The notes beneath the pieces are model-generated. The model did not search any database, was not told the origin of the DNA, and worked only from the letters and a program-made list of their open reading frames with translations. From positions 1 to 64,000 of the forward strand of contig NZ_JMCB01000025.1 in the NCBI RefSeq assembly GCF_000737315.1: a stretch of 64,000 nt of DNA, in the 5' to 3' direction. The DNA is from Hyalangium minutum. Lineage in GTDB: Bacteria; Myxococcota; Myxococcia; Myxococcales; Myxococcaceae. Both the position numbers and the translations under genes were made by a program. Of this stretch, positions 33,462 to 52,937 are shown one piece after another. Each line of letters starts with the position of its first letter. Position 1 is the first letter of the stretch.

Positions 33462-33623
33462 GGTGAGTCCTCGCCAAAGCAACCTTCGCGCCATGTCGGC
33501 CCGGTCCTATTCCCGACACCCTACCCCCGCAGGCGGTTCCGATTGCTTTTTGTAAGGAATAACCCAGATGGAAGGCGAGAGCGAGACCCCCGGGCTCCTC
33601 TGTCTGGTTGCTAAATGTGGGTT

Positions 33624-33639
33624 TGGCGAGCACTTTGCT
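33624..33639 (+). promoter_or_regulatory. candidate sigma54 -24/-12 promoter upstream of the WYL pair
   Basis: TGGCGAGCACTTTGCT: GG at 33625-6 and GC at 33637-8, the canonical 12-bp spacing, with TTGCT -12 element. Confidence 0.55.
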
Positions 33640-33777
33640 TTACCTGCTTGCGCGTTCAGTCAGGTGTGGATATCCGATCCAGACCCACCTGCCATGCACC
33701 CGCCGTCCAACCGCCCGATGCCCATGCCCGCCTTGACCATGCGTACCCGGATTCGCCATCGTCGCCGACCTCCTGAC

Positions 33778-34797
33778 ATGGAACGTACGGAACGCCTCCT
33801 GGATTTGGTTGCCCTGCTGCTCGACGCCCGCGAGCCCATCTCGTGGGCGGAGCTGCGTGAGCACTTCCCCTCCGACTACGGAGGCATCTCGGACGATGCC
33901 GCTGAGCGCAAGTTCGAGCGCGACAAGGCGGAGCTGCTCGAGCTGGGCCTGCCGCTCACCTATATCCAGGGCGACGACGACCGGAAGGACGGCTACATCG
34001 TCGACCGGAGCGCGTACTACCTGCCGGAGGCGAACCTCACCAAGGAGGAGCTCGCGGTGCTCTACGCCGCAGGTAGCGCCGCGCTGGCCTCGGGAGCCTT
34101 CCCAGGACGTGATGACCTGGCGCACGCGCTGCGCAAGATTGGCTTCTTTGCCGGAGATGCGCTGCCTTCACCTCGCGTGCGCATGGAGGTGGGCTCGGCG
34201 CAGAGCGATCCGGAGCTGTCCGCCCGCCTGGAGCAGCTCTGGGAGGCATGTGCCACGCACAAGTGGGTGCAGATCGCCTATGGCTCGCCCAAGCGCGCGG
34301 AGGTGACGGACCGCAAGGTGGACCCGTACGGCCTGGCGCTGCGCCGGGGCGTGTGGACGCTCGTGGGCTACTGCCACCTGCGCCAGGGCCTGCGCTCCTT
34401 CCACGTGCACCGCATCCGCGAGCTGAAGGTGAACACCGCCCGCCCGCGCACGCCGGACTTCGAGGTGCCCGCGAACTTCTCGCTGGACTCCTATGTGGCG
34501 TACTACCCGTGGCAGCACCGCTTCCACGAGCCCATGGAGGTGACGCTGCTGCTGCGAGGAGACGCGGCCCAGCGCGCCGCCAGCCTCTTCCCGGGTGCCA
34601 CGGTGGAGCCGGCCGAGGACCGCGTCCGGGCCCGCCTGAGTGTGACGTACCTGGAGGGCCTGCTGCGCTTCTGCCTGGCGCTGGGGCCCGAGTGCCGCGT
34701 GGAGTCCCCCGAGCCCGCTGTCGCCCGTGTCCGGGAGATGGGCGCGCGCATCCTCGAGCGCCACGCGGTGGCCGAGGAGAGGAAGGTGAGCGCATGA
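33778..34797 (+). CDS. PafB-like HTH-WYL-WCX transcriptional regulator
   Basis: RKFERDKAELLELGLPL (PafB-type wHTH); VDPYGL...WTLVGYCHLRQGLRSFHVHRI (WYL). Confidence 0.88.
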   Translation: MERTERLLDLVALLLDAREPISWAELREHFPSDYGGISDDAAERKFERDKAELLELGLPLTYIQGDDDRKDGYIVDRSAYYLPEANLTKEELAVLYAAGSAALASGAFPGRDDLAHALRKIGFFAGDALPSPRVRMEVGSAQSDPELSARLEQLWEACATHKWVQIAYGSPKRAEVTDRKVDPYGLALRRGVWTLVGYCHLRQGLRSFHVHRIRELKVNTARPRTPDFEVPANFSLDSYVAYYPWQHRFHEPMEVTLLLRGDAAQRAASLFPGATVEPAEDRVRARLSVTYLEGLLRFCLALGPECRVESPEPAVARVREMGARILERHAVAEERKVSA

Positions 34798-35717
34798 GTA
34801 CCGTTCATGAGCGGCTCCGCCGCCTGCTGTTCCTCGTGCCCTACGTCTCCAAGCACCCCGGCGTGTCGGTGGATGATCTGGCCAAGGCCCTCAACGTGAA
34901 GCGCGAGGACCTGCTGGAGGAGCTGGATCTGCTCACCTGCGTGGGCCGTCCGCCGTTCAACCCGGACGACTACGTGGACATCTACGTGGACAATGATCGC
35001 GTCTACGTGGACCTGGATCAGCGCCTGTCCCGCCCTCCGCGCTTGACCGCGGGTGAGGCCGCCGCCCTGGCCGCCGCCGCCGAGCTGTTGCGCCCGGCCG
35101 CCGGAGACGCGCTCCAGAGCGCTCTGCAGAAGCTGGAGAAGATCCTCCCGGCCGGCGCCCGCGAGCGCTATCGGGAGATGTACCGGAAGATCGACGCGTC
35201 CACGGATGCCCCGCAGTCGCTGGGGCCGCTCACGCGCGCCATCCTGGAGCGGCGCGAGGTGACGTTCGACTACGCCAGCCCGGGCCGTCCCTCCGAGCCT
35301 CGGCAGGTGCGCCCGTACGAGCTGCTCAGCCACCGCGGGCAGTGGTACCTCCAGGGCTTCTGCCACACCCGGCAGGACGCGCGGCTGTTCCGCCTGGACC
35401 GCATGGAGAACCTGTCGCTGACGGACACCACCTTCCAGCCGCCGGAGAACGCGCGCGCCGCGGTGCCCAACCCTGCTCGCACGGATGCGGGTGTCCGGGT
35501 GCGCTTCTCCAAGCTGGTGGCGCCGTACGTTACGGAGCGCTTCGGCTCGGACGCCCGGCCGCTGGCCGACGGGGGAGTCGAGGTCCGCGTCGTGAGCGAT
35601 TCGGAGCGCTGGCTGACGCAGTGGGTCCTGTCCTTCGGAGGGGAGGCGGAGGTGGTGGAACCGGCCTCCGCGCGCGCAGCCGTTGCCCGAGCCGCCCAAG
35701 CCTCGCTAGGATTCTAA
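34794..35717 (+). CDS. PafC-like HTH-WYL-WCX transcriptional regulator
   Basis: RLLFLVPYV...LLTCVGRPPFNPDDYVDI (PafC-type); VRPYEL...WYLQGFCHTRQDARLFRLDRM; WVLSFGGEAEVVEP; ATGA overlap with the upstream gene. Confidence 0.88.
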   Translation: MSTVHERLRRLLFLVPYVSKHPGVSVDDLAKALNVKREDLLEELDLLTCVGRPPFNPDDYVDIYVDNDRVYVDLDQRLSRPPRLTAGEAAALAAAAELLRPAAGDALQSALQKLEKILPAGARERYREMYRKIDASTDAPQSLGPLTRAILERREVTFDYASPGRPSEPRQVRPYELLSHRGQWYLQGFCHTRQDARLFRLDRMENLSLTDTTFQPPENARAAVPNPARTDAGVRVRFSKLVAPYVTERFGSDARPLADGGVEVRVVSDSERWLTQWVLSFGGEAEVVEPASARAAVARAAQASLGF

Positions 35718-35724
35718 GAAATCC

Positions 35725-37359
35725 ATGGGCTTCCAGCTGAAGATTGCCGAGGGCAAGGACGCGGGTAAGGAGTTCGAGTTCGATCAGGAGTCCGTCCTGA
35801 TCGGCCGGACTCCCGAATGCGACGTTGTGCTCTACGACGCCGGCGTGTCGCGCAAGCACTGCCGCATCTTCAACGAGGGCAGCGACTTCCTCATCGAGGA
35901 CATGGGCAGCTCCAACGGCACCAAGGTGAACGGAGCGGCCATCACCCGGAAGCAGGCGCTGGCCACCGGGGACAAGCTGACGCTGGGGCCGGTGGTCTTC
36001 GTCTTCGAGGCCATGCTGGATCAGGCCGAGGAGCCCAGCACGGACGCGGGCGTCGACCTGCCCCCTGCGGAGCCCGGCACGGATGCGAACAGCACGCGCA
36101 TCGTCTCCGTGGACAAGGTGAAGCCGCGCGCCAAGAACAAGGGCGAGGCATTCAAGCCCGAGGGCGCGGAGGCCGAGCCGGAGAACCTGGACAAGATCCA
36201 GCGCTCCGCCACGCGTGCTCTGCCCGCGGTGCGGCCGAACCGCCCGGCCACTGGTAACGTTCCGCGGACCTCTGGCTCTTCGGCCGCGGTGCCTCGGGCC
36301 TCTGGTCCGTCAGGCTCCATCGAGCGTGTGAGTGGAGCCTCGCCCGTGCCTCGCCGGTCCGGTGGCAGCGGCGCGGTGGCGCGTGCGGCACCCAAGGAGG
36401 GCGCGCTGTCCGCCGCCGAGAAGGCCCGCATCAAGCGCGAGTCTCCGGGTCCCCTCGCGGCGGCGAAGCTCTTCTGGCTTCAGGCCAGCACCAATGTGCG
36501 CCGCGGCATCCTGGGAGGAGTCGGGGTGCTGGCGCTCGCTCTGGTGGCGACCGCGTACTACTACGTGATCAGCCAGGACATCGGCCTGGGCGGCCCACGC
36601 CGCGGGCCCGAGCCCATGGAGTTGAGCAACAAGGCCATCCCGGACGTGTTCGGTTTGGGCGAGGGCGTCGACTACCCCAAAGCGGACCTGAAGAACTTCA
36701 CCTGGGAGTACACCGCCGCGACGCGCGCGGTGGTCATTCTCCACTTCCAGGCGCAGGGCATCTCCCAGGGCGAGGTGGTGGTGACGGTGAACGGCGTGGA
36801 CGTGGGCCAGGTGCCCGCGGACACACTGGCCAGCCGCGACCGCTCGCTGGAGATCATGATCCCGCCCAACCTGCTCAAGAAGGGCGAGACCAACCGCATC
36901 GTCTTCGACAACACGAAGAACCCGCCGGGCGAGGACGAGTGGCGCATCTGGAACGTGCGCGTGGAGAAGGCGCTGCTGCCGGATCTGCCGCCGGATGAGC
37001 TGGTGGCGAAGGCCAAGGAGGCCTACTCGCGCGGCCGGCTGAACTTCGAGCGCATGGACGTGGGCGCGCGCAACCGCTACGAGGCGTGGAAGTCCTTCCG
37101 CGAGGCGTGGCTGCTGCTGGAGGCCCACCCCGAGCCCAAGCCGGACCTCTACTTCGAGGCCAAGGACCGAATGAAGGACGCGCAGCAGGAGATGGACAAG
37201 ACGTGCGCCAAGCTGCTGCTGGAGACGGAGGGCTACTACAACCAGCGCAACTTCAAGAACGCCCGGGACACGCTGGATCACATCCGCGAGTACTTCCCGG
37301 AGTATGATCAGCCCTGCGCCACGCACGCCGAGAACAAGCGCGCGGAGTACGGCTTCTAG
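35725..37359 (+). CDS. FHA domain, single-TM protein with C-terminal helical (TPR-like) region
   Basis: LIGRTPECDVVLYDAGVSRKH...DMGSSNGT; low-complexity linker; TM GILGGVGVLALALVATAYYYV. Confidence 0.85.
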   Translation: MGFQLKIAEGKDAGKEFEFDQESVLIGRTPECDVVLYDAGVSRKHCRIFNEGSDFLIEDMGSSNGTKVNGAAITRKQALATGDKLTLGPVVFVFEAMLDQAEEPSTDAGVDLPPAEPGTDANSTRIVSVDKVKPRAKNKGEAFKPEGAEAEPENLDKIQRSATRALPAVRPNRPATGNVPRTSGSSAAVPRASGPSGSIERVSGASPVPRRSGGSGAVARAAPKEGALSAAEKARIKRESPGPLAAAKLFWLQASTNVRRGILGGVGVLALALVATAYYYVISQDIGLGGPRRGPEPMELSNKAIPDVFGLGEGVDYPKADLKNFTWEYTAATRAVVILHFQAQGISQGEVVVTVNGVDVGQVPADTLASRDRSLEIMIPPNLLKKGETNRIVFDNTKNPPGEDEWRIWNVRVEKALLPDLPPDELVAKAKEAYSRGRLNFERMDVGARNRYEAWKSFREAWLLLEAHPEPKPDLYFEAKDRMKDAQQEMDKTCAKLLLETEGYYNQRNFKNARDTLDHIREYFPEYDQPCATHAENKRAEYGF

Positions 37360-37458
37360 CCTTCCGTCTGGTCGTGGACATTGCAGTGCCGCAGGTAAGG
37401 CGAGCGCGCCTGCCAGTGGGTTGCCGCGCCGCTGGAGCATCCTCACCCTACCCTTGCC

Positions 37459-38760
37459 ATGTACGAGCAGGGGGTGGGAAGCGAGCGGGTGGGGTTGGCG
37501 CGGATCGACGATCGTCCGGCGCGAGTGGAGTCCAACGTGCGGGCGGGGCAGGGGCGGAGTCCATGCCCGCTCCCCCAGCATGAGGTCGTCTGGAGCCCGT
37601 CGGTTCCCAACCGGCTGCTGGCGCGCTTCTATCTGCCGCGCAGCCACTCGGTGCTCCAGGGGAACTCCTGCCAGCTGTTGAGGGATGGCGTGGAGGCGTA
37701 CCCGGCCATGATCGAGGCCATTCGGAGCGCCCGGCGCTACGTCCGCCTCGAGACGTACATGTTCATCACCGACGCGGTGGGCGAGCTGTTCGGCCAGGCG
37801 CTGGCCGAAGCGGCCGAGCGGGGCGTCCACGTGAAGGTGCTCTATGACGCGATGGGCTCATGGACGAGCCGCCGCGGCGTCTTCGAATCGCTGCGCCAGC
37901 GCGGGGTGGACATCCGCCCCTTCAAGCCCCTGAGCCTGAGCCGGGGGCTGCGCTACCTGATGCGGCGGGACCACCGGAAGATCCTCGTGGTGGATGGGAA
38001 GGTGGCCTTCGTGGGCGGGGTGAACATCTCCGCGCACTGGGCACCACCGGAGGGGCAGGGCGGGGGCTGGCGCGACGACGTGCTGCGCATCGAGGGGCCA
38101 GCGGTGCATGAAATCGAGCGCCGCTTCCTGGCCACCTGGCGCATGGCCTTCCAGGAAGGCTTGGAGCGCGTCCGCTACCGGATGCAGGGGCTGCGGCACC
38201 TGCGGCGGCCGGGGCCTCCCAAGGGCAACGTGTGCCTGACGGTGCTCTCCAGCCGGCGCAGCATCCACCGGGCGTACCTGCACGCCATCTCCCGGGCGCG
38301 GCGGAGCGTGCTGATCGCCGCGGCGTACTTCGTGCCGGATCGGCGCATGGTGGCGGTGCTGCGCGAGGCGGCCCAGCGCGGCGTGGAGGTGAGCCTGCTG
38401 CTCAACGGCCGCAGCGATCACCCCTTCCTGGAGCACTGCACGCGAGCCTTCTACGAGAAGCTGCTCAGCGCGGGCGTCCGCATCTTCGAGTGGCAGCGCG
38501 GGGTGCTGCACGCGAAGACGGCGGTGGTGGACGGCGTGTGGGGCACGCTGGGCTCGTTCAACCTGGAGCGCATGAGCCTGGCCTTCAACCACGAGGTGAA
38601 CGCCGTCTTCGCCGATCCTCAGCTGGGGCGCACGGTGGAGGAGTCGTTCCGCAACGACTGTGGCACCTGCCGCGAGGTGAGCCTGGAGGAGTTCCGCCGC
38701 CGGCCGTTCTGGCAGAAGGTCGTCGAGCGCGTGCTCTACTTCTTCCGGAAGATCCTCTAA
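37459..38760 (+). CDS. phospholipase D superfamily protein, cardiolipin synthase ClsB-like (start uncertain)
   Basis: two HKD motifs HRKILVVDG and HAKTAVVDG; LETYMF, YDAMGS, GSFNL. Confidence 0.88.
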   Translation: MYEQGVGSERVGLARIDDRPARVESNVRAGQGRSPCPLPQHEVVWSPSVPNRLLARFYLPRSHSVLQGNSCQLLRDGVEAYPAMIEAIRSARRYVRLETYMFITDAVGELFGQALAEAAERGVHVKVLYDAMGSWTSRRGVFESLRQRGVDIRPFKPLSLSRGLRYLMRRDHRKILVVDGKVAFVGGVNISAHWAPPEGQGGGWRDDVLRIEGPAVHEIERRFLATWRMAFQEGLERVRYRMQGLRHLRRPGPPKGNVCLTVLSSRRSIHRAYLHAISRARRSVLIAAAYFVPDRRMVAVLREAAQRGVEVSLLLNGRSDHPFLEHCTRAFYEKLLSAGVRIFEWQRGVLHAKTAVVDGVWGTLGSFNLERMSLAFNHEVNAVFADPQLGRTVEESFRNDCGTCREVSLEEFRRRPFWQKVVERVLYFFRKIL

Positions 38761-41721: not shown

Positions 41722-43035
41722 CTACCTGCGGAAGGGGCGCGAGCCGCGGTGGTCTTCCCACCACTGCTGCCACTGATCGATGGCGGCGCGTTGACGGCGG
41801 ATGGGCCAGTCAGGCTCGAAGCCAATGGCCTGCTGGGAGTGGATGCGGAGTTCCTGAGCGGCGCGCTCGCGGACGTCGAAGGGGCTGTGAGGGTCGGCAA
41901 GCTCCTCGACACAGATGCCGAGGGTCAGCGGCTTGCCGCGCCGGAAGCGCTTGGCGCCAGAGAAGCGGGGAGCGTGACCGTCCCACCATTGCGTCCAGGT
42001 GATGGCGTCCGTAGAGGGGAGACGGATCACGCGGCCAGGCTCCGGTCCATCCGCGCCTTCCTCCAGGGCTCGGGCGGTCACGTAGAGGTTGGCGCCTGTC
42101 ATGAGGTTGAGCGCGGTGCCAGCCGCCAGCCGGACTTCGAGCGCATCCGAGGCGAGGTGCTCGATGAGGAAGGGGACGGAGGAGGGGACCCCCAGGATGC
42201 CGAGCGCCGCGATGGCTCGGGGGGCCAGCTTCGGGTGGGCGCAGAGCTTCTGAAGGAGGGGGAGGTCCCCCTCTTCCCCCGCCATGGCGAGTAAGCGGGG
42301 GAACCCGCCGGGCAGGTCGCCACCGGCTTGGCAGGCCTGGCGGCAGTGCTTCAGCGCACGGGGAGAGCCCAGGCAGAGGGCTGCGAAAGCCAGAGATTCC
42401 CACTCCGAGACAGGAACGAACTGGAGCAGGTTCTCAATGGTTGTGACTGCGGGCCGGTAGCCGAGCCGGGCCAGCGCCATGACCGCGGCACTGCGCACCT
42501 CCAGCGAGGCATCCTCAAGCAGGGGGAGAAGCCGCTCGGCAGTGCCTTCATTGCGGCGCCCCAGGATGCGGGCTGCGGTGGCGCGCACCTCGGAGCGCGG
42601 GGAGGCGAGCAGACCGGCCACGCGCTCAGCAATTCGAGGATGCTCGGAGAGCACGAGTACCTCCTCCCAAACATGGAGCAAGTCCGCGGCAGTCTCTTCC
42701 ACCGTGTCTAGCGCCTCGCTCAGTCCATCGGTTCCGTCCTTCTGCTGGAAGGAAATGATGGCGTAAGCTCCCGCAGTGACCTGGGACTCGTCGCCACCCG
42801 CCATGGCTTCCCGCGCTAGCTCAAGAGCAAGAGTGCCTCCCACACGCATTGCATCGACATGTGCTTCAATCCGGTCATCTAGATCGCCGAGCTTGGTCCA
42901 GGGGGAGTCGGGGGCATGCGCACATCGCTTTCGTTGGCCAAGCAGAAACTCAATCTCGGAGAGATGCTCCTCATGAAATGCGAGGAGGAACTTCGCGAGT
43001 CCTGGGTGCTGTGAAAGAGAGGGAAGTGCTTTCAT
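41722..43035 (-). CDS. TIGR02270 family HEAT-repeat protein (T6SS vgrG-cluster accessory); possible TTG start at 43083
   Basis: EEHLSEIEFLLGQR...LDDRIEAHVDAM N-terminus; HEAT-like repeats; C-terminal RFRRGKP...ERAAQELRI. Confidence 0.8.
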   Translation of the reverse strand: MKALPSLSQHPGLAKFLLAFHEEHLSEIEFLLGQRKRCAHAPDSPWTKLGDLDDRIEAHVDAMRVGGTLALELAREAMAGGDESQVTAGAYAIISFQQKDGTDGLSEALDTVEETAADLLHVWEEVLVLSEHPRIAERVAGLLASPRSEVRATAARILGRRNEGTAERLLPLLEDASLEVRSAAVMALARLGYRPAVTTIENLLQFVPVSEWESLAFAALCLGSPRALKHCRQACQAGGDLPGGFPRLLAMAGEEGDLPLLQKLCAHPKLAPRAIAALGILGVPSSVPFLIEHLASDALEVRLAAGTALNLMTGANLYVTARALEEGADGPEPGRVIRLPSTDAITWTQWWDGHAPRFSGAKRFRRGKPLTLGICVEELADPHSPFDVRERAAQELRIHSQQAIGFEPDWPIRRQRAAIDQWQQWWEDHRGSRPFRR

Positions 43036-43122
43036 GTCAGGTGAGTTGATGACACATGCGAGCTTTGTACGCACTCCCCTCAACCTTCTGCGAAGGCTTC
43101 GGGATCAACGGGAGCACTCACC

Positions 43123-44157
43123 ATGACAGGGGAGGTTGTCCTAGGGCTAGGCCTTTGTACCCCCGTGGGAATATCGGCGCAGATGTCGCTCGCATCCATG
43201 CGGGCAGGGATCTTACGCTTCGTGGAAACAGAGGTGGAAGACGGCTTCGACGAACCCGTACGGGCCTCGCGACTTGAGCTCTTGGAGACGTCTCTGACAC
43301 GTACCGAGCGAATGATCCTCCTTGGGCGAGAGGCACTCGCGGAGGTGAGGCATCTGTTCGCGGGAGCACAGGCGAAGCCAATTCCTCTGTATCTGGGAAT
43401 ACCGGAGCCTGGGATAGGCGCAGCGGTAGAGCGAGAACCCCTGCTGGCCGCGTTGCAGGAGGTGGCAGGGGAGCAAGTCAGGTTCATGGAAGTACAAGAA
43501 GGAGGTCGTGCTGCATTCTTCGAGGCGTTGGTTGCTGCACGGGAAGACCTGCGGTCAGGTAGGGCCGGCCATGTGGCGCTGGTGGGGGCAGTGGATTCGC
43601 TATGCGATAGAGTTTCGCTGAACGCACTAGCGGAGGCGAGAGTGCATCTCGGGCCTGAAAATCCGGATGGCCGGATCCCAGGTGAGGCAGCCGGATTTGT
43701 CGTTGTCGCCCGTCCGGGCGGTCCAAAAGCGGTGAGTCGTCAAGCGTTGGGAGTGGTTTTAGGCGCCGAACTGGCGATGGAACCCCTGCCCTTCAGCTGT
43801 CAGGGGCCAAGCCAAGCGGACGGACTGACTAGGTTATTCCGGAACTTGAGCCGAGACCCGGTAGCAGGAGCACGACGCATGGACGCAGTCCTGGCCTGTC
43901 AACCCGGAGAGTCATTCTGGTCCACGGAGTTTTCGAGAGCTTACCTTCGAAACGCGGCATGGATGCCTGAGCCGCTGCGATGGAGGTCTGCAGGAGAGTT
44001 CCTTGGCGATGCGGGAGCAGGGGCGGGTCCTGTCATGTTAGGCGCAGCACTCTCTTGGGCAACTCGACAGGCTGAGCAGTCGCGGACTGTGGTCTATGGG
44101 TGCTCAGATGGAGGACGGGTGGGCGCCTGTGTCGTAGAGACGTTCTCAGCGGGATGA
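43123..44157 (+). CDS. thiolase/beta-ketoacyl synthase-like T6SS adaptor (PRK06147-like)
   Basis: LGLCTPVG...ASMRAGI, GRAAFFEAL, LVGAVDS, IPGEAAGF, GEFLGDAGAGAG; directly upstream of DUF4150 gene. Confidence 0.82.
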   Translation: MTGEVVLGLGLCTPVGISAQMSLASMRAGILRFVETEVEDGFDEPVRASRLELLETSLTRTERMILLGREALAEVRHLFAGAQAKPIPLYLGIPEPGIGAAVEREPLLAALQEVAGEQVRFMEVQEGGRAAFFEALVAAREDLRSGRAGHVALVGAVDSLCDRVSLNALAEARVHLGPENPDGRIPGEAAGFVVVARPGGPKAVSRQALGVVLGAELAMEPLPFSCQGPSQADGLTRLFRNLSRDPVAGARRMDAVLACQPGESFWSTEFSRAYLRNAAWMPEPLRWRSAGEFLGDAGAGAGPVMLGAALSWATRQAEQSRTVVYGCSDGGRVGACVVETFSAG

Positions 44158-44169
44158 AGAGGAGGATCC

Positions 44170-45510
44170 ATGGCAGACGTTTTCGCCAACGGCCGTTCCA
44201 TTCTCCACAAGGGGGATGGCAACACTCACGTCTCGGCACCACCCGATGTTTGCAAAGTGCCGACACCCGGAGGACCTGTTCCTACTCCCTTCGTGAACTC
44301 AGCTCAGGATTCGATGCTCGACAAGGGCAGCCAAACGACGACCATCGAGGGGCACCCGATTGCGCTGGCGGATTCTGAGCTCAGTGTCAGCTCCGGGGAC
44401 GAACCTGGGACGGCTGGAGGCCTCGTGTCCTCCAAGTTCAAGGGGAAGATGGCTTGGAGCGCCGTCAGCACGGACGTCAAGGTCGAAGGCAAGGGAGTAG
44501 CGCGGTTCTTGGATCCCACCCTGCACAACGGCAATACCTTCAACATCTGTTTCATCTCCCGGGGAGGAACCGGGCTGGCGTATGGCGACGATGCGAAGTG
44601 CCCAGCATGCGGGCAGGCTGGACGGAAGCATCGAGTACTCGAGACGCCTCTGGCCAAAGGGGCTGTCGGAGCCATCTTCCTGGAGCTCGACAAGCGCCTC
44701 AAAGAACAGAAACCTTTGATCGAACAACACCGCAAGTTGCGAGCAAAGCGCAAGGCGCTGACAGTCAAGTCAGAGAGAGAAGCCAACGCGGCGTCGTTGT
44801 CTCTAAAGCCAAAAGAAATGCAAAAGCAGCAGTTGATGCTGCTTCGTGAGCAAGCCATCGCGCAGAAGTTGATCGCGAAGCTCCAAGAGATTGGTCCTCA
44901 GATTCATAAGATTGACGGTGAACTCAAGCCTGAGTACGACAAGATAAAGGAGATGAGGCGTAGGTATAAAGCTGAGATAGATAAGATCAGCCAAGAGATG
45001 AATAGGATCAACGAGGAGATTGACCAGAAAAACCCGGTGCTGGACCTCAATGATCAGGAAGGCACATTCGTCGATGGCTACATGGTAGGGGCCTGCATCT
45101 GTAAGTGCGTCGGCAAGGAGCCGAAGATGCTTGCTGCTCGTTCTGGAGCTTCCAATGCGGCGTTCAAGACAGCGGCGTCCGCTGCGGGCTTCGAACCGGT
45201 TGCGGGTTTTAGAATGAGCAGCAACCAGCAGGCGCACATCCAGATGGTGGGGCGTGCCAAATGGGAATGTGCCGCTCCCCAACTACTCTCCTCAGGACGG
45301 GCGGGCGGGCACAATGTGAAGACCATGTCAGAGCGCCTCTATGCGCCGGAGGCACGTCCATCTCCTTCTGTGAGGTACAAACGAACGGATACGAAGGGCA
45401 CGAGGAAGAGAGAGGAGCAGTTCAGCCACGGAGACTCAGTCCCTTCCTGTAAAGAATGCCAGAAACTTATTCCGGAAATGCTTTGCTACAACCGACAGGA
45501 ATGCTCTTGA
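44170..45510 (+). CDS. DUF4150 (PAAR-like) T6SS effector: PAAR-like, Zn ribbon, coiled coil, putative deaminase-fold toxin
   Basis: GGAGG RBS; VFANGRSILHKG...PDVCKVPTPGGPVPTPFVN...GDEPG...DVKVEGKGVAR...HNGN; CPACG; WECAAPQLL...MSE...VPSCKEC. Confidence 0.85.
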   Translation: MADVFANGRSILHKGDGNTHVSAPPDVCKVPTPGGPVPTPFVNSAQDSMLDKGSQTTTIEGHPIALADSELSVSSGDEPGTAGGLVSSKFKGKMAWSAVSTDVKVEGKGVARFLDPTLHNGNTFNICFISRGGTGLAYGDDAKCPACGQAGRKHRVLETPLAKGAVGAIFLELDKRLKEQKPLIEQHRKLRAKRKALTVKSEREANAASLSLKPKEMQKQQLMLLREQAIAQKLIAKLQEIGPQIHKIDGELKPEYDKIKEMRRRYKAEIDKISQEMNRINEEIDQKNPVLDLNDQEGTFVDGYMVGACICKCVGKEPKMLAARSGASNAAFKTAASAAGFEPVAGFRMSSNQQAHIQMVGRAKWECAAPQLLSSGRAGGHNVKTMSERLYAPEARPSPSVRYKRTDTKGTRKREEQFSHGDSVPSCKECQKLIPEMLCYNRQECS

Positions 45511-45513
45511 GTC

Positions 45514-46239
45514 ATGAATAAATTGTTGATGCTCCTCCAGCGCTATGTGCCTGACTATCAAAATCTGATTGAAGGAGTTCATGGGTGGGCATTGGAGGAG
45601 TTGGAGGAGGTCTTGGGACGGCCTCTTCCCGGCTTCTATCGGACCTTTGCCACCTTCATGGGCAAGAGGGCAGGGCCCCTTCTTGAACATGTGCATGGTT
45701 ATGATCCGCTCGAAGTGATGGACTTCTATCAGTTGACCCCTGCGTCATACCTGCCGCCAAAGCGGTTTCTATACGTCTTTGGGGATTCTTCGACGGATGC
45801 CCAGCACTACTGGCTGGATTTGGAGGCCCCATCTGAAGACGAGGATTGCCAAGTGGTGAGGATCCCCTTGGGCAAGGAGGCTTGGAAGACCCGGCTCTCC
45901 CAAGCCTATGTCAGTCTCCAGGAAATGCTTTTCGTGTGGGCAATGAGGTATGTGGGGCTTCCGACCTTTGAATATGACGCAGAATATCTGCTCGACATGG
46001 CCCCACCCGACAGTGAGCAAGAGGTGGAGGGGCTGGCTCATGTCTTTGTGAAGCTTGGTTTTGCTCGACTCTCCTATCCTCGGAGATGCATGCTTTTCGA
46101 GCGGGACGATGCTGGTATTGAATTGTATCGGCATCCCTCTGCTTCTGGGCTTTCTTTCCGGGTAGGCATGCAGGGACGGGAGGAGTTCCGGCGCTTTCAG
46201 GCCATCGTCGAAGACATAAAAGGAATAAAGGCAGTGTAG
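45514..46239 (+). CDS. SMI1/KNR4 (SUKH)-like immunity protein
   Basis: GWALEELEEVLGRPLPGFYRTFATFMG pattern; 3 bp after the effector stop; AT-richer codons. Confidence 0.75.
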   Translation: MNKLLMLLQRYVPDYQNLIEGVHGWALEELEEVLGRPLPGFYRTFATFMGKRAGPLLEHVHGYDPLEVMDFYQLTPASYLPPKRFLYVFGDSSTDAQHYWLDLEAPSEDEDCQVVRIPLGKEAWKTRLSQAYVSLQEMLFVWAMRYVGLPTFEYDAEYLLDMAPPDSEQEVEGLAHVFVKLGFARLSYPRRCMLFERDDAGIELYRHPSASGLSFRVGMQGREEFRRFQAIVEDIKGIKAV

Positions 46240-46285
46240 ACGGCCCGGCAGGTCCTCTATGTGCTGGCGGTCTACAGACTTGAGC

Positions 46286-47326
46286 TCAAAGTGAACCTTC
46301 CCAGGGTTCTAGCTCCCGGACGAGGCTGTACTCGTGCTGGGCCAGCTCTCGGTGGGCGGGAACTGCCGCGCGCCAGATCAGCGTCAGGGTTCGAGCCTCA
46401 GGCTCGAGCAGCACGGCGTCCAAGGCCAACTCCCTGCGGTCCACCCGATGGCGGAACACGGTCTTGGCCAACAATCGATAGCGTGGGAGGGGAAAAGCAA
46501 GCTGCCCATCCGGCGAGAAGCCCGAGAGCACCACCGGCTCTCCTCCCTTCAACCCAGGAGATGCGATGAGTCCTGGTGAAGCTGCATGAAAGAAGTGGGG
46601 ATCAAAGTCACGAGGCCACAGCGGGGCTCGTTGCTCCACCCAGGCCTCGTCATACGTTCCTGCCAGCTGGAGGCGGGGTTGCCAGCTCCGGGCGATAGGG
46701 CCAAAGCCTGCAGGCGCTACGCGATCCGTGGGACTCGAGATCTGCTGGAGGGGATCCTCCAGGTTCGGTAGGGGCTGCTCGACCGCCTCCTTTACAGAGC
46801 CATACAGGCCCATTCCCACAGGGTTTCTTGGCTCGTATGCGAGAGGCTCCTTGCCCGTGGCTGCGGCTACTCCGCCGAAGCTGCGCTCGTAGCGCAGCGG
46901 CATGGACTCGAACGGCCTGGGCGCCGAGGCCTTCAGCCCCAATGCGCCCCGGTACCACACCCGTGTCCCGAAGACGCGGACCCCCTTCTGGCATGCCCCT
47001 ACCTTCACGGCCGCCAGCAATTCCGGCACCGGCTTGCCTCCAGGCGCCCATGCATGACCCGAGACGTAGATGTCCGTTCCTGGCCGGATATAGGCCGTCT
47101 GTCCCTCGTAGCGCAGGCTCGAGGCACCAGGCTCGCCCCAGTAGACGTCCTCCATCACGGGCGGGCGTTGCTCCTCGCTCGGCTTGGGCGGATTTTGAGA
47201 GGGCCGGCCTGCGGGAGGTAACTCGAACCGGCCAGCAACGCAGATGAGCAGCAGCTCCTCGCCCTCCTTGTTCATCGAGGGCAGGTCCACAGCCTTGAAG
47301 CGGGTGAGGTTCTCGAGGTTCGGCAT
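46286..47326 (-). CDS. DUF2169 family T6SS adaptor
   Basis: DVYWGEPGASSLRY...PGTDIYVSGHA, LRYERSFGG, GFGPIARSWQPR...GTYDEAW...PRDFD...FHAA, LDAVLLEP. Confidence 0.92.
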   Translation of the reverse strand: MPNLENLTRFKAVDLPSMNKEGEELLLICVAGRFELPPAGRPSQNPPKPSEEQRPPVMEDVYWGEPGASSLRYEGQTAYIRPGTDIYVSGHAWAPGGKPVPELLAAVKVGACQKGVRVFGTRVWYRGALGLKASAPRPFESMPLRYERSFGGVAAATGKEPLAYEPRNPVGMGLYGSVKEAVEQPLPNLEDPLQQISSPTDRVAPAGFGPIARSWQPRLQLAGTYDEAWVEQRAPLWPRDFDPHFFHAASPGLIASPGLKGGEPVVLSGFSPDGQLAFPLPRYRLLAKTVFRHRVDRRELALDAVLLEPEARTLTLIWRAAVPAHRELAQHEYSLVRELEPWEGSL

Positions 47327-49643: not shown

Positions 49644-50213
49644 TCAGGCCCCGCGCCGCACCGGGGGAATGTCTTTCTTCAGCTCTCCAGGCCAGCTGCC
49701 TTCCTTCTCGGAGCGGAAGATCTTCCGCCAGGTGCCGTCCTTCGTGAACGCGCCGGGCGGAATCAGCTCGAACGTCTCGTCCGTCTTGGGATGGTGGTAG
49801 ACCCTGACGCCCTCGATGGGCGTATCCGTGTCCCGCGCCCGCTCTACCTCGCCGCGCAGCCAGAGCTCCTCCAGCTTCTTCACCAGCACCGAGTACTCCT
49901 CGGGCGTGGGGGCATCTCCGGGATAGAGCTGCTCGAAGAAGGAGCGCTCGCCGGGGTCCTCCACGCGAGCCCACATCCCTTTGAGCGGAAACTCCGGAGG
50001 AATGTAGCGATAGACGATGTCCGTCTCCTTCTCCCGGTACCACTCCTCGGGCGTGGTGTAGGAGAACAGCTTGCCCACGGGAATGCGCTCGACGGTGCCT
50101 TTCTCCAGCTCCGCCGCCAGCCGCAGCTGGAACTCTTGCACCTCGTCGAGGGCGTTGAACTCCTTGCCAGAGTGCAGCTTGGAGAGGATGGAGCGCTTGG
50201 AAAACAAGCCCAC
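49644..50213 (-). CDS. putative immunity protein for the VgrG-fused toxin, with internal duplication
   Basis: starts 15 bp after the toxin-bearing vgrG stop, AGGAAAGG RBS; two ~65-aa repeats. Confidence 0.7.
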   Translation of the reverse strand: MGLFSKRSILSKLHSGKEFNALDEVQEFQLRLAAELEKGTVERIPVGKLFSYTTPEEWYREKETDIVYRYIPPEFPLKGMWARVEDPGERSFFEQLYPGDAPTPEEYSVLVKKLEELWLRGEVERARDTDTPIEGVRVYHHPKTDETFELIPPGAFTKDGTWRKIFRSEKEGSWPGELKKDIPPVRRGA

Positions 50214-50228: not shown

Positions 50229-52937
50229 CTACAAGAACACCGTCTTGAGGAAGGCACCCGTCGCGGCGCCCCCCTTCTCCAGCACAGTCTTCGGCACATT
50301 GATGAGGATTTGCGTCGCCCCACCCGCGTAGCCCGTACCCTGGCCCGCGACGATGCCCTCGTACACCTTGGTTCCTGCCTTGAGGGTGAAGGAACTCGAC
50401 TGGGAGGCGGCGTTGCCCCACTCGGGGCGCAGCGCCATGCGGATCTTCCCCTCGAGTCCCAAGGGCCGGGAGCCTCCGGTGACCCAGCGGCCCTGGGGGA
50501 AGGCGCCGCCGCCGTGGAGCCGCTCTACCTGCACGTCTTTCGTGAGCACCTTCTCCGTGTACTTGCCATCCTTGAAGGCCTTGGCGTCCTGAGGCGACAG
50601 GGGTCCCTTGTCTCCCTGGTACGTCTTGCCCTCCTTCGCCACCGAGGGATCCAGCACCTCCTGGAAGGACTTGCTCTGGCCGCTGCCGCCGGACTCCTTC
50701 TTGATCTTGCTGCCCTTGAGCTTGAGCTGCGAGCCGTCGACCGTCAGCTCCTTGGCCCAGATCTTCACCGTGCCGGACTTGTCGATGAGCAGTGCCAGCT
50801 CGTCGCCCACCACCACGGCGGCCTCGTCCGCCTTGAACTTCAGCTCCTTCGAGCTGAAGCCTGTCTCCTGCTTCACCTCGGTGAAGGTGTGGCGGCCGGA
50901 CTCGTCTTTGCGATCCTGGCCCGTGTCCTGGAGCAGCTTGCCTTTGACTTCCTCCTCCACCTCGCCGAGCACATCGCTGCCGCGGTTGCCTCCGACCGTC
51001 TCCGACCAGTCGACGCCCACGTCCACCTTCTTCAGTCCGGCGATCTGCTCCAGGCGCGCTCCTCCCACGGCGGTGTTCGACGCCAGCGCCACGTTGATCG
51101 AGTAAGCTGCCCCGATGTTGAGCGCCGCCGCGGCCCCCACGTTGAACGCCACGGCCTGCGTGACGTTCAGGGTGTGGGCCATGCCCACGGTGATGCTCTG
51201 GGAGCCGTCCACTCCCTCGTCGTGGCTCTCCTTGATCCGGGTGTCGCGGTTCCCTGTCACCGTCAGCGTCTGGTTGCCGTCGATGGCGGAGTCATCCTCG
51301 AGCCTCACCGCGAGCGACTGCTGGCCGTGCACCTCGCGAGAGCGATCCTTCTCCACCAGGAGCTGCTCGTTGCCGCGGACGGTCTGCGTCTTGTCGTTGA
51401 GCGTCTCGAGGTTCTCGTCCTTCTGCGCGTGGAGGTAGACCTCTTCCTCTCCCGCCGCGTCCTCGATGCGCACCTCGTTGAAGCCGCCGCCGCCCACGCT
51501 GGAGTCCGTCCGCTGGGTGCTCTTCGTCTTCTCGCCGGGCAGCGCCACCGGCGGCGGGTTGTTCCCGTTGTAGACGGCGCCCACCACCAGCGGCCGGTCC
51601 GGGTTGCCCTCCAGGAACCGGACCACCACCTCCTGTCCCACTCGGGGGATGAAGTTGGCCCCCCAGCCCTCGCCCGCCCAGGCTTGCCCCACGCGCACCC
51701 AGCAGGAGCTCTGTTCGTTGCGCTGTCCCTGCCGGTCCCAGTGGAACTGCACCTTGATGCGTCCGTGCGTGTCGGGCTGAGTCTCCTCGCCCGAGGGCCC
51801 TACCACCGTGGCCGTCTGGATGCCCGCGATGACGGGTGGCCGCGTGGTGCGCCGGGGACGGTAGGGAATGCCCGAGGGCAGTGTGAGGAACTCGTTGCGA
51901 TAGGAGCCCTCTACCGGATGCGCGTCCCCCACCATCTCCTGGCGCTGTCCCTCGTGGCGCACGCGGACCAGCAACAGCTCCCCGTTCAGCTCGTCGTCCG
52001 GGTGCTCCGCCAGTGCGAAGGTGGCTCCCGGCAGCATCCGGTGGCACGTCCCCGCGCACGCCAGCGTCTTCACGCCGAAGCGCTGCTCCTCCAGTCGCAC
52101 CTTGCTCAGCCGCTTGCCCTCGCCCGGCTGCACGTAGTCGCCCGGGTAGTCGTAGATCTCCAGGCCCTGGACTTCCTGCGTCTCGTTGACCTGGGTGGTG
52201 AGGTCCAGCGTGGGGCGCTCGAAGTCGAAGTCCCGGAGCGCCACCTTGTGGGGGAGCAACCGGTGCGCGAGCGCCACCCGAGTGATGTGCTCGCCCACCG
52301 TGGGCGCCTGGCCCGTCTCCGAGCGGAAGAGCAGGGTGGACTCTCCCGCCAGGGGCTCGTGCGCGCTGGCCGAGTCTCCCAGCACCATCACGTGCGAGTC
52401 CGGGCCGTGCTCGAAGAAGAAGAAGAGGCCCTCGGACTCCAGCAGCCGGAGCACGAAGTCCAGGTCTGTCTCCCGGTACTGCACGCAGTACTCGCGCTGG
52501 GGGTAGCTCCCGGACAGTGCCAGCCGGTGCTCCACGTGCCCGGCCTTGAGCACCTGGGCCACGATGTCCGGCACGGAGAGGTTCTGGAAGATGCGGCTGC
52601 GCCTGACATGCCGCAGCTGCCGCAGGGTGGGGGCCATGCGGACGCGGTACTCGGGCCGGCCATGGCGCAGGCCCACGTCCACCACCTCCTCCACCCAGCC
52701 GTGGATGAAGCGCTCGGAGCCCTCTGGGGTTCTCACCGAGAGGGCCGCCTGTGTTCCGAGCAGCTCGTGGGTGTCCAGGGGCTCCAGCGCCGTGGGGAAG
52801 AACTCGACCTGGAAGTCGAACAGCTCGGACAGTGCCTCGTTACCGCTCAGGCGGGTGACGGTGAGGTCCCCCGCCGCGAGGGGTCCTGCCTGGAGCTCGA
52901 AGACCAGCCGATGTTCACGAGCCACTGCTCCCCCCAC
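50229..52937 (-). CDS. vgrG: evolved VgrG with C-terminal TNT/ART-like toxin extension (start 52937 or 52925)
   Basis: full VgrG core (EALSELF, REYCVQYRETDLDF, GRIKVQFHWD, FIPRVGQEV, HAQKD) followed by a ~145-aa extension after SGGSGQSKS. Confidence 0.93.
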   Translation of the reverse strand: MGGAVAREHRLVFELQAGPLAAGDLTVTRLSGNEALSELFDFQVEFFPTALEPLDTHELLGTQAALSVRTPEGSERFIHGWVEEVVDVGLRHGRPEYRVRMAPTLRQLRHVRRSRIFQNLSVPDIVAQVLKAGHVEHRLALSGSYPQREYCVQYRETDLDFVLRLLESEGLFFFFEHGPDSHVMVLGDSASAHEPLAGESTLLFRSETGQAPTVGEHITRVALAHRLLPHKVALRDFDFERPTLDLTTQVNETQEVQGLEIYDYPGDYVQPGEGKRLSKVRLEEQRFGVKTLACAGTCHRMLPGATFALAEHPDDELNGELLLVRVRHEGQRQEMVGDAHPVEGSYRNEFLTLPSGIPYRPRRTTRPPVIAGIQTATVVGPSGEETQPDTHGRIKVQFHWDRQGQRNEQSSCWVRVGQAWAGEGWGANFIPRVGQEVVVRFLEGNPDRPLVVGAVYNGNNPPPVALPGEKTKSTQRTDSSVGGGGFNEVRIEDAAGEEEVYLHAQKDENLETLNDKTQTVRGNEQLLVEKDRSREVHGQQSLAVRLEDDSAIDGNQTLTVTGNRDTRIKESHDEGVDGSQSITVGMAHTLNVTQAVAFNVGAAAALNIGAAYSINVALASNTAVGGARLEQIAGLKKVDVGVDWSETVGGNRGSDVLGEVEEEVKGKLLQDTGQDRKDESGRHTFTEVKQETGFSSKELKFKADEAAVVVGDELALLIDKSGTVKIWAKELTVDGSQLKLKGSKIKKESGGSGQSKSFQEVLDPSVAKEGKTYQGDKGPLSPQDAKAFKDGKYTEKVLTKDVQVERLHGGGAFPQGRWVTGGSRPLGLEGKIRMALRPEWGNAASQSSSFTLKAGTKVYEGIVAGQGTGYAGGATQILINVPKTVLEKGGAATGAFLKTVFL

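Follow-up and report, generated by a model that had tools for sequence, protein, structure and literature searches.

The DUF4150 effector encoded in this region of Hyalangium minutum and the gene directly downstream of it very likely form a T6SS toxin-immunity pair, and the toxin domain of the effector is a new, myxobacteria-restricted family within a known effector architecture. Taken as a whole, the protein is best explained, if tentatively, as a T6SS effector with a hydrolytic toxin core, in which water bound to a zinc ion on three cysteines would be activated by a glutamate. The features of the locus are displayed in Table 1; the window is the whole stretch of DNA that was analysed, 64,000 nucleotides long.

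Table 1. Features of the effector locus (positions in the window)
Feature	Position	Strand	Basis or remark
HEAT-repeat protein	41722..43083	-	recurs beside the cassette in other genomes
PRK06147-type ketoacyl-synthase-like accessory protein	43123..44157	+	weak ketoacyl-synt match; gene order
Effector ORF	44170..45510	+	446 aa; PAAR-like tip domain and toxin module
Tox-PAAR-like (DUF4150) domain	44230..44538	+	residues 21-123; PF13665
A-Y-G-D-D junction and Zn knuckle, C144-P-A-C147-G-x5-H154-R-V-L-E158	44578..44643	+	start of the polymorphic module
Knuckle codons	C144 44599-44601; C147 44608-44610; H154 44629-44631	+	
Helical hairpin arm, residues ~160-286, four helices	44647..45027	+	AF2 secondary structure; ~125 residues
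Alpha/beta toxin core, residues 292-446	45043..45507	+	alignment and AF2
Core codons	C367 45268-45270; E388 45331-45333; C427 45448-45450; C430 45457-45459	+	
Predicted cognate immunity protein, 241 aa	45514..46239	+	N-terminal SUKH-like region and C-terminal extension
DUF2169 chaperone (TvpA/Tap2-type) for DUF4150 PAAR domains	46286..47326	-	E 5e-95; PMC11883445, PMC13373197
VgrG spike protein, 757 aa	47354..49627	-	89% identical in L014

As seen in Table 1, the effector lies among genes for its delivery. The initial annotation had proposed a T6SS PAAR-like effector with a C-terminal toxin, and this proposal agrees with the present results: PF13665 is found at the N-terminus (E 1.2e-29; 103 bits against a Pfam cut-off of 31), the PAAR part of PDB entry 8qjc also aligns there, genes for VgrG and a DUF2169 protein are adjacent, and a PRK06147-type gene lies upstream. 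The latter gene stops 12 nt before the effector begins, and the gap holds an AGGAGG ribosome-binding site. Its product shows a weak ketoacyl-synt match (E 0.011), while the homologue P0064 of Archangium violaceum, in which this accessory protein is fused to the effector, scores 7e-6. DUF2169 and PRK06147-type genes directly before a DUF4150 effector represent the Tvp class II order, which the order at this locus fits (PMC7714669, PMC13373197). Homology and synteny show the N-terminal DUF4150/PAAR-like domain to be the part predicted to cap the VgrG spike, and the VgrG, DUF2169 and PRK06147-type neighbours to be its putative loading set, of the usual kind. The cassette of DUF2169, ketoacyl-synthase-like, PAAR-toxin and immunity genes is kept in 18 genomic loci. 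No T6SS core genes were found within the 64-kb window, and the locus is an orphan vgrG island.

The same arrangement is observed in P. aeruginosa, where Tse7 (PA0099) and Tsi7 are accompanied by PA0097 (DUF2169) and PA0098 (PRK06147) (PMC13373197, PMC7714669). Both Tse7-Tsi7 and Tde2/Tap2 of A. tumefaciens share with this locus a DUF4150 PAAR-like N-terminus joined to a C-terminal toxin, as well as VgrG, a DUF2169 chaperone, a PRK06147-type protein and a downstream immunity gene. Unlike the Tse7 and Tde2 loci, vgrG and the DUF2169 gene are inverted relative to the effector here and in the syntenic locus L014. Additionally, the toxin domains of Tse7 and Tde2 are recognised nucleases (HNH-type or Ntox15), whereas the domain described here matches no family.

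The C-terminal strings that first drew attention to the effector were all found in it (GYMVGACICKCVGKEPKMLAARSG, WECAAPQLL, MSE and HGDSVPSCKECQKLIPEML). The flagged span, positions 45076-45510, encodes residues 303-446 and the stop codon; it is real, but it covers no more than half of the unit. The toxin module extends over residues ~141-446, from the YGDD junction, and consists of 3 parts: a zinc knuckle, a helical, coiled-coil arm, and an alpha/beta core. DNA similarity to L014 is interrupted between nt 44591 and nt 46293, and GC drops to 0.52-0.56 across this stretch. Identity to L014 is 82% in the PAAR domain, 47% in the knuckle region, 28% in the arm and 46% in the core. The polymorphic cassette is the toxin module together with the immunity gene (nt ~44591-46293), and residues ~141-446 are shown here to form a single toxin module, which travels with that gene and diverges together with it. 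The AF2 model of residues 120-446, built on a deeper alignment and covering the whole module, has a pLDDT of 94.7 and a pTM of 0.88, which is consistent with the module as one rigid unit; an earlier model of the flagged C-terminal 151 residues alone, from 20 sequences, had a pLDDT of 77.7.

The arm represents a linker that has expanded in this lineage specifically: 28-156 residues are found at its position, and in many relatives just ~30-45. Searches with it gave matches of coiled-coil type only, and the PADLOC and Pfam matches on the effector to LmuB/JetC and ASRP were discarded as coiled-coil similarity and nothing more. The core runs from beta1 (YMVGACIC) and beta2 (MLAAR-SG) through two helices to a helix starting at C367-A-A-P and a strand with E388. 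It then continues into a basic beta-hairpin insert, absent from the shortest relatives, a helix starting at C427-x-x-C430, and a tail with C439 and C445.

The ORF of the immunity protein begins 3 nt past the effector TGA. A SUKH-type immunity gene at this distance had been claimed; the position and a dedicated pairing were recovered, and the SUKH identity is carried by sub-threshold matches. An immunity homologue is found directly downstream in the 17 loci having room for one, and likewise in Nannocystis (hhalign 98.5%) and beside the effector P0067 (hhalign 98.0%). Toxin and immunity protein co-occur down to ~27-30% toxin identity, and spare immunity copies are present in L003 and L018. Homology and synteny show the downstream gene to be the predicted dedicated immunity gene of this effector, and the immunity family as a whole appears to be dedicated to this toxin family.

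Against a SUKH family model the product scores 19.4 bits, compared to a cut-off of 25.4 (E 0.0017). Its homologues match SMI1_KNR4 in 13 of 18 cases (best E 7e-5), SUKH_5 in 4 and SUKH_6 in 1, all below threshold, and the Nannocystis homologues show the same weak matching; a PDB sequence search with the immunity protein gave no match. These proteins resemble SUKH (SMI1/KNR4) immunity proteins in downstream position, in acidity (the median pI of the family is 5.25), in cytoplasmic placement (no signal peptide was seen on inspection), and in SMI1_KNR4, SUKH_5 or SUKH_6 matches over the first ~125 residues. They differ in an extra conserved C-terminal half of ~110 residues and in that all matches fall below the Pfam gathering score. 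Judging from these profiles, the immunity protein probably belongs to the SUKH superfamily. The toxin core is mildly basic and the immunity protein acidic, which agrees with a nucleic-acid target but has no discriminating power.

About 250 relatives of the toxin are known, and every named one is a member of Myxococcota annotated as PAAR-like only. A profile search over 1.84 billion representatives returned 186 matches. In the annotated database, the 151-residue alignment recovered short fragments only, as the search favours targets of a length close to that of the query, and the PAAR-free module alignment was used there instead. A Pfam census of the 87 longer matches among the 186 found Tox-PAAR-like in 61 and eCIS_core in 2. 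PseudoU_synth was seen in none of these 87, and no pseudouridine-synthase architecture appeared among the 186; the suggested resemblance to the N-terminal domain of RluA-type enzymes was not supported.

Conservation was counted in an unfiltered alignment of 247 relatives. C367 is present in 236/236 and A368 in 232/236; position 369 is Ala or Gly in 232/236, Leu in 3 and Glu only in P0067. E388 is kept in 236/241, C427 and C430 in 241/241, and C439 in 228/231. Mean column identity among diverse members is 16%; compared to this value, the near-complete retention of the motif indicates that its residues are conserved far beyond chance. The initial annotation had pointed to two glutamates near the first motif as possible substitutes for the canonical one. 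The first, E366 of ECAAP, is variable (Glu in 70/232), while the second, E388 of MSE, is the one retained, with Leu in its place in the clade of P0092 and P0107. The HG motif noted in the same span has its H420 conserved in the close family only, H381 is present in 63 of 79 members, and no His is invariant in the family.

The zinc knuckle exists in all complete PAAR-linked relatives. In six complete relatives, of which three are linked to an eCIS core, the knuckle is missing together with C311, C439 and C445; the same six retain C367, E388, C427 and C430, and their cores hold 3-4 Cys only. Three cysteines and one glutamate (C367, C427, C430, E388) are the sole ligand set that survives in the eCIS-linked clade. 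A second informative case is P0067, which reads C-A-E-P and F-T-A-R, with Glu at 369 and Ala at 388, a reciprocal carboxylate swap; its second motif is an exact canonical P-C-x-x-C. The swap is known from this one protein sequence, which is identical in two independent assemblies and whose cassette is intact, with a homologue of the immunity gene.

The knuckle-less relatives bear on the readings that place H154 at the active site. A zinc-finger His-Me (HNH-like) nuclease or an H-S-E-type ADP-ribosyltransferase with H154 catalytic is extremely improbable, since these six complete relatives, without H154 and knuckle, keep the rest of the core. The C-P-x-C-G...H pattern, with a strand and then a helix behind it, bears a superficial likeness to zinc-finger HNH motifs, and the order H154...S325...E388 recalls those of ADP-ribosyltransferases; however, the helix after the knuckle has no conserved Asn or His, and no HNH or ADP-ribosyltransferase match was obtained with Pfam or Foldseek. 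Nucleases do occur on other DUF4150 effectors (PMC13373197).

Two other arrangements of the metal ligands were rejected. A treble clef of C144/C147 and C427/C430 with a C367-H154-E388 triad is not compatible with the six relatives that lose C144, C147 and H154 and keep C427, C430, C367 and E388. A C-terminal four-Cys finger (C427, C430, C439, C445) is unlikely because the relatives without a knuckle also lack C439 and C445, and because a helix of 10 residues separates C430 from C439, one at each end.

According to the AF2 secondary structure, C367 and C427 immediately precede helices 368-378 and 428-437, and strand 383-391 comes after the C367 helix via a 4-residue turn. By simple geometry, this turn would place residue 388 beside the N-terminus of the C367 helix. 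The clustering of the cysteines and the placement of E388 are inferred from this predicted secondary structure and not from measured distances. A single catalytic zinc would be held by C367 at the helix N-cap and by C427 and C430 at the N-terminus of the last helix. The zinc-bound water would be activated by E388, on the strand running back along the C367 helix, so that the proton-shuttling Glu would come from a neighbouring strand and not from a C-A-E helix. Such a centre, similar to that of Cys3-type cytidine deaminases, would make the core a hydrolytic deaminase or amidohydrolase, while the knuckle, together with C311, C439 and C445, would represent dispensable structural metal sites. The target would be cytoplasmic, probably either a nucleotide or a nucleobase within nucleic acid, and the immunity protein would block the toxin in producer and kin cells. 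The retention of three Cys and Glu in the eCIS-linked clade and the carboxylate swap in P0067 favour this Zn(Cys)3-water/Glu centre, and a hydrolase of this type is nearly as likely as not.

Cysteine hydrolases, too, typically have an invariant Cys that caps the N-terminus of a helix and precedes small residues. The core could accordingly be read as a thiol enzyme of protease, deamidase, transferase or amidase type, with C367 as the nucleophile, E388 as base or partner, and C427/C430 as a structural or redox pair. C367 is just such an N-cap residue before small residues, no polar residues other than Cys and Glu are invariant across all clades, and no Zn-hydrolase fold was recognised. Nevertheless, this reading is unlikely. 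An invariant His is missing, as the clade without the knuckle has no H154, H381 is found in 63/79 and H420 is variable; no papain-like, NlpC/P60 or other thiol-hydrolase match was obtained with Pfam or Foldseek; and the shifted Glu of P0067 occupies precisely the place that it has in the C-A-E motif of zinc deaminases. Moreover, C427 and C430 are as invariant as C367 and are the sole other cysteines in some members, which a shared three-ligand metal site fits better.

Enzymes of the cytidine deaminase (CDA) fold carry two zinc motifs, [H/C]-x-E at the N-terminus of helix 2, which provides a ligand and the catalytic Glu, and P-C-x-x-C at the N-terminus of helix 3. Known deaminase toxins are delivered by the T6SS and paired with SUKH-type immunity proteins. 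A derived CDA fold, homologous to DddA and SsdA, truncated to beta1-beta2-alpha2-beta3-alpha3 and deaminating DNA or RNA bases, was weighed as a reading of the present toxin. The motifs M-x-G...S-G, C-A-x, a strand and P-x-C-x-x-C are collinear with these elements. As in Cys3-type cytidine deaminases (B. subtilis-type CDA, blasticidin-S deaminase, DddA and SsdA), a Cys-Ala starts one helix and P-x-C-x-x-C a later one, a beta-hairpin with small-residue motifs lies upstream, and one Glu is predicted to be essential; P0067 even has the exact C-A-E and P-C-x-x-C. The Cys3 and Glu core is universal, and, like DddA and SsdA, the protein is a predicted interbacterial toxin, with T6SS delivery and a SUKH-type immunity protein.

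On the other side, all homology tests were negative. No deaminase family was found in a Pfam and NCBIfam scan of the effector, nor in a Pfam scan at E<=10 of 79 members and 5 isolated cores; PDB sequence-profile searches with the toxin module gave nothing; and hhalign gave 0.2% against E. coli TadA and 0.1% against Cdd. Foldseek searches of the PDB with the 151-residue domain model and the pLDDT-94.7 model returned nothing at E<=0.001, and none of the 50 matches listed is a deaminase; the list for the latter model is dominated by coiled-coil proteins. The second CDA motif is present as P-[S/P]-C-x-x-C, with a helix from residue 428 in the model. In the first motif, C-A-[A/G] in 232/236, the Cys and Ala are kept but the Glu is not, so that the defining Glu is missing in >98% of members and is replaced by one on the following strand (E388) instead of two residues past the Cys. 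The chain ends after the CxxC helix, and therefore beta4 and beta5 of the deaminase fold are missing; the AF2 model has no beta4-alpha4-beta5, elements of the three-layer alpha/beta/alpha fold with its five-stranded sheet of order 2-1-3-4-5. Further differences from CDA enzymes are two helices inserted between beta2 and the Cys helix, and the extra N-terminal knuckle, helical arm and C-terminal Cys tail.

Membership of a deaminase-fold clade, as first proposed, was thus not supported by Pfam, PDB profiles, hhalign or Foldseek, nor by a chain in which these strands are missing, while a non-canonical, deaminase-like Zn site received indirect support from the Cys3 and Glu kept across clades and from the Glu of P0067 at C-A-E. 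Descent from the deaminase fold is doubtful on this evidence, and so, to a similar degree, is base deamination as the actual reaction. Against the Zn-hydrolase reading count the lack of a match to any deaminase or other Zn hydrolase, Ala or Gly at the canonical Glu position in the counts given above (232/236), the missing strands, the absence of the beta-hairpin insert in the shortest relatives, the Leu at position 388 in the P0092/P0107 clade, and a carboxylate swap known from one protein sequence.

The core might also be non-enzymatic, either as a zinc-stabilised module poisoning a conserved cytoplasmic machine stoichiometrically or as a mainly structural tip extension of low toxicity. The domain is small and cysteine-rich and has no recognised fold, and its long arm could bind. 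TsaE (MXAN_1813) of M. xanthus, with its partner TsaI, is reportedly antifungal and only mildly toxic to kin; among Myxococcus PAAR proteins whose C-terminal domain is confined to myxobacteria, it is the only one known to have been studied. TsaE was compared to this family by description, and no proteins of M. xanthus DK1622 are among the named matches of the family searches. This reading is very unlikely: a single buried-type Glu kept over ~250 sequences and its reciprocal swap argue for catalysis, and an immunity gene that is closely linked to the toxin, diverges along with it and has orphan copies speaks for real toxicity.

Polymorphic toxin domains are a productive source of new enzymology, and DddA gave the first mitochondrial base editors. 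In predatory, social myxobacteria, T6SS toxins govern kin discrimination, with antifungal activity in one case. The present family is well defined, with ~250 sequences, a high-confidence predicted structure without a PDB neighbour, and a dedicated immunity family. It also provides a natural experiment, in which a catalytic carboxylate moves between secondary-structure elements around a predicted metal site. A protein annotated as 'DUF4150 domain-containing protein' thereby gains a testable active-site hypothesis with specific mutants. A more speculative and rather doubtful proposal is a minimal rewired deaminase (beta1-beta2-alpha-beta3-alpha, with Zn on three Cys and the Glu on the helix or the adjacent strand) that would edit DNA or RNA bases of bacterial, possibly fungal, targets. 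If this were true, the family would represent a new and very small deaminase clade, whose toxins would be mutagenic or poison translation and would be delivered via T6SS and eCIS. With ~150 residues and no accessory zinc sites, the core would then rank among the smallest enzymes performing deamination. If the chemistry were other than deamination, the family would represent a new zinc-dependent toxin mechanism.

The protein encoded by the effector gene contains a Tox-PAAR-like/DUF4150 (PF13665) match at residues 21-123 (E 1.2e-29), and VgrG, DUF2169 and ketoacyl-synthase-like (KS-like) genes lie alongside, which bears out the initial annotation of a DUF4150/PAAR-like T6SS effector. The C-terminal span singled out there, 45076-45510, corresponds to residues 303-446 and reads exactly as quoted. 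Coiled-coil noise aside, residues 125-446 have no match in Pfam, NCBIfam or PADLOC. Additionally, GC content drops from 0.66-0.70 to 0.52-0.56 over 44500-46250.

Features of the effector locus and other genes in the window
Feature	Coordinates	Strand	Remarks
WYL/WCX-domain, FHA/YscD-like and PLD-like (PLDc_2) proteins	33568-38760	+	beside aconitase; unrelated to the toxin finding
HEAT-repeat protein	41722-43083	-	beyond the KS-like ORF
KS-like ORF	43123-44157	+	directly upstream of effector; weak PF00109 match
Effector ORF	44170-45510	+	446 aa
Immunity ORF	45514-46239	+	241 aa; starts 3 nt after the effector stop codon
DUF2169 gene		-	converging on immunity gene; E 5e-95
VgrG gene		-	beyond DUF2169, converging on immunity gene
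ORF after second VgrG	49644-50213	-	189 aa; no Pfam match
Second VgrG	50229-52937	-	902 aa; ~300-residue C-terminal extension without Pfam match

A DUF2169 chaperone, a PRK06147-type protein and a DUF4150 effector form a known gene arrangement (PMC13373197, PMC7714669), for example PA0097/PA0098/Tse7 of P. aeruginosa (PMC13373197), and the window cassette fits this arrangement. The set of HEAT, DUF2169, KS-like, PAAR-toxin and immunity genes is present in nearly all of 18 loci found by tblastn in species-representative genomes. In Archangium violaceum, a single reading frame joins the KS-like homologue to the PAAR-toxin effector (P0064, 722 aa). The KS-like ORF fits the proposed PRK06147 adaptor, or TvpD-type protein. 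The HEAT-repeat gene adjoins the DUF2169/KS-like/toxin cassette in at least 10 of the 18 loci, co-directional in most and inverted in the window and in the syntenic locus L014, which comes from a MAG of a related Myxococcaceae; no description of a role for this protein in T6SS loading was found. No T6SS core genes occur in the window. The second VgrG may be an evolved VgrG, with the 189-aa ORF as its own partner or immunity protein.

The toxin unit is larger than the span first singled out. In the family alignment, invariance extends far to the N-terminal side of residue 303, into the segment A-Y-G-D-D-x-x-C144-P-x-C147-G-x5-H154-R-V-x-E158. The Cys-Cys-His knuckle in this segment is found throughout the superfamily, 28 to 156 residues from the G-Y-M-x-G hairpin, and with spacing so variable the ~125-residue coiled coil of the window protein represents an expanded linker inside one module. 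The AF2 model of residues 120-446 (79-sequence alignment; pLDDT 94.7, pTM 0.88) opens with a long hairpin arm built from four helices. The strands beta1 (304-311) and beta2 (320-324) come next; a pair of helices then leads to the helix that begins at A368, and strand 383-391 and a beta-hairpin (400-417) precede the final helix, which begins at K428. Comparison with L014, whose VgrG is 89% identical, independently confirms the larger unit. DNA similarity, 75-85% in the flanks, stops at nt 44591 and returns at 46293, collapsing exactly from the A-Y-G-D-D junction of the effector to the end of the immunity gene; protein identity is 82% in the PAAR domain, 47% in the knuckle region, 28% in the arm and 46% in the core. 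This break therefore delimits a polymorphic cassette, made up of the immunity gene and the part of the effector gene that encodes the toxin module, beginning at the YGDD junction. By analogy with VENN, the demarcation motif in CdiA, YGDD may demarcate this polymorphic toxin family.

A search with residues 125-446 returned 40 proteins, all sharing the full-length architecture; the named members are all Myxococcota (Myxococcus, Corallococcus, Archangium, Vitiosangium, Hyalangium and Sorangium). Nannocystis, Enhygromyxa and Paraliomyxa joined them when the annotated database was searched with a PAAR-free module profile, and an exhaustive search of 1.84 billion cluster representatives with the C-terminal 151-aa profile gave 186 proteins at E<=0.001. 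The annotations of the named members go no further than 'DUF4150' or 'PAAR-like domain-containing'. Complete cassettes are also found on MAG contigs that bear the labels 'uncultured Bacteroidetes' and 'Alsobacter sp.'; either binning errors or horizontal transfer from Myxococcota into other groups could account for this. M. xanthus TsaE (MXAN_1813)/TsaI, described as an antifungal PAAR protein of the T6SS whose C-terminal domain is confined to myxobacteria (PMC10433427; bioRxiv 10.64898/2026.08.28.747804), may belong to this family.

Wherever a locus has room for it, a homologue of the immunity ORF directly follows the toxin gene. The pairing is kept even in Nannocystis, whose toxin is ~27% identical with a short linker and a different PAAR subtype (hhalign 98.5%), and likewise for the toxin P0067 (hhalign 98.0%). 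The SMI1_KNR4 match of the window protein itself is sub-threshold (19.4 bits; cut-off 25.4 bits). Since 13 of 18 homologues match SMI1_KNR4, four SUKH_5 and one SUKH_6, the N-terminal half is likely SUKH-type. A second, diverged copy lies ~1.1 kb downstream of the first in L003 (8293-8985), and in L018 (134-994) a 51-aa C-terminal toxin remnant precedes an immunity gene that is still intact. Orphan immunity genes of this kind are to be expected in polymorphic toxin systems. The metagenomic P0053 (156 aa) is a chimeric ORF in which the C-terminal part of the toxin, ending at the first Cys motif, is continued by the C-terminal half of the immunity protein, presumably through a deletion fusing the two genes.

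Conservation was counted in 247 sequences selected without a motif filter. C367 (236/236), C427 and C430 (both 241/241) are invariant, A368 (232/236), E388 (236/241) and C439 (228/231) nearly so, and position 369 is A in 218, G in 14, L in three and E in one. E366, the Glu of 'ECAAP', is not universally conserved, nor are H381, H420 and E158. Six complete proteins (P0129, P0133, P0137, P0150, P0153 and P0181) lack the knuckle, C311, C439 and C445 together; this group, to which P0256 belongs as a cluster-mate of P0153, retains C367, A368, E388, C427 and C430, with just three or four cysteines per core. These accessory ligands, lost together, thus form dispensable and presumably structural sites, and C427/C430 are independent of the knuckle. 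The same clade excludes HNH or ART readings based on H154. In P0129, P0133 and P0256 the core sits behind an eCIS_core (PF13699) domain, and long tails of acidic or coiled-coil character come after it; T6SS and extracellular contractile injection systems therefore share this core.

In the proposed mechanism, C367, C427 and C430 would bind a single zinc ion where the N-termini of two helices face each other, with E388 activating the zinc-bound water. P0067 alone has Glu at 369 (W-T-C-A-E-P), and it alone has Ala at 388 (F-T-A-R-Y-F), the alignment being free of gaps; its second motif is the canonical P-C-x-x-C, two independent assemblies encode the identical protein, and its DUF6484/DUF2169/KS-like/toxin/immunity cassette is intact. 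The model places a four-residue turn between the C367 helix and strand 383-391, from which we infer by simple geometry that residue 388 lies beside the N-terminus of that helix; a carboxylate at 369 or 388 would serve one and the same site. A non-enzymatic binder is unlikely, as the Glu is invariant and swappable. A thiol enzyme using C367 is a less probable but still plausible alternative; a conserved His is missing, and the equal invariance of C427 and C430 would be left unexplained. A small clade (P0092/P0107) has Leu at 388, and an additional Cys and an Asp immediately precede its conserved Cys (E-C-D-C-A-A-Y); it may represent a third carboxylate placement or an inactivated lineage.

The hydrolytic centre so formed would work like the Cys3 cytidine-deaminase site; the toxin motifs M-x-G, S-G, C-A-x, strand and P-x-C-x-x-C are collinear with beta1-beta2-alpha2-beta3-alpha3 of the cytidine-deaminase fold. 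As the immunity protein is cytoplasmic, the target would be cytoplasmic too, and charge (median pI 8.1-8.7 for toxin cores, 5.25 for immunity proteins) weakly suggests a nucleic-acid or nucleotide substrate. What was seen initially is confirmed and extended, and its interpretation partly supported. The suggested resemblance to the N-terminal domain of long RluA-type pseudouridine synthases found no support: neither a pseudouridine synthase nor a deaminase domain occurs among 87 longer relatives, 61 of which carry Tox-PAAR-like and two eCIS_core. Placement in a deaminase-fold clade failed every membership test. Even with the cut-off relaxed to E<=10, no deaminase Pfam family matched any of 79 members or any of five isolated cores, among them P0067; PDB sequence profile searches returned nothing; and hhalign gave 0.2% against E. 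coli TadA and 0.1% against E. coli Cdd, aligning only a 13-column PCGHCRQ/PSCKECQK stretch. Foldseek retrieved no deaminase for either AF2 model, although coiled-coil matches crowding the list for the better one temper this negative result. Moreover, the chain stops after the CxxC helix, so beta4-alpha4-beta5 is absent, and the shortest relatives also lack the inserted beta-hairpin. The toxin is therefore proposed to function in the manner of a deaminase, and no membership of the superfamily is claimed for it. The architecture of the effector is ordinary; what is new is the family formed by its toxin domain, for which there is now a specific active-site hypothesis that can be tested.
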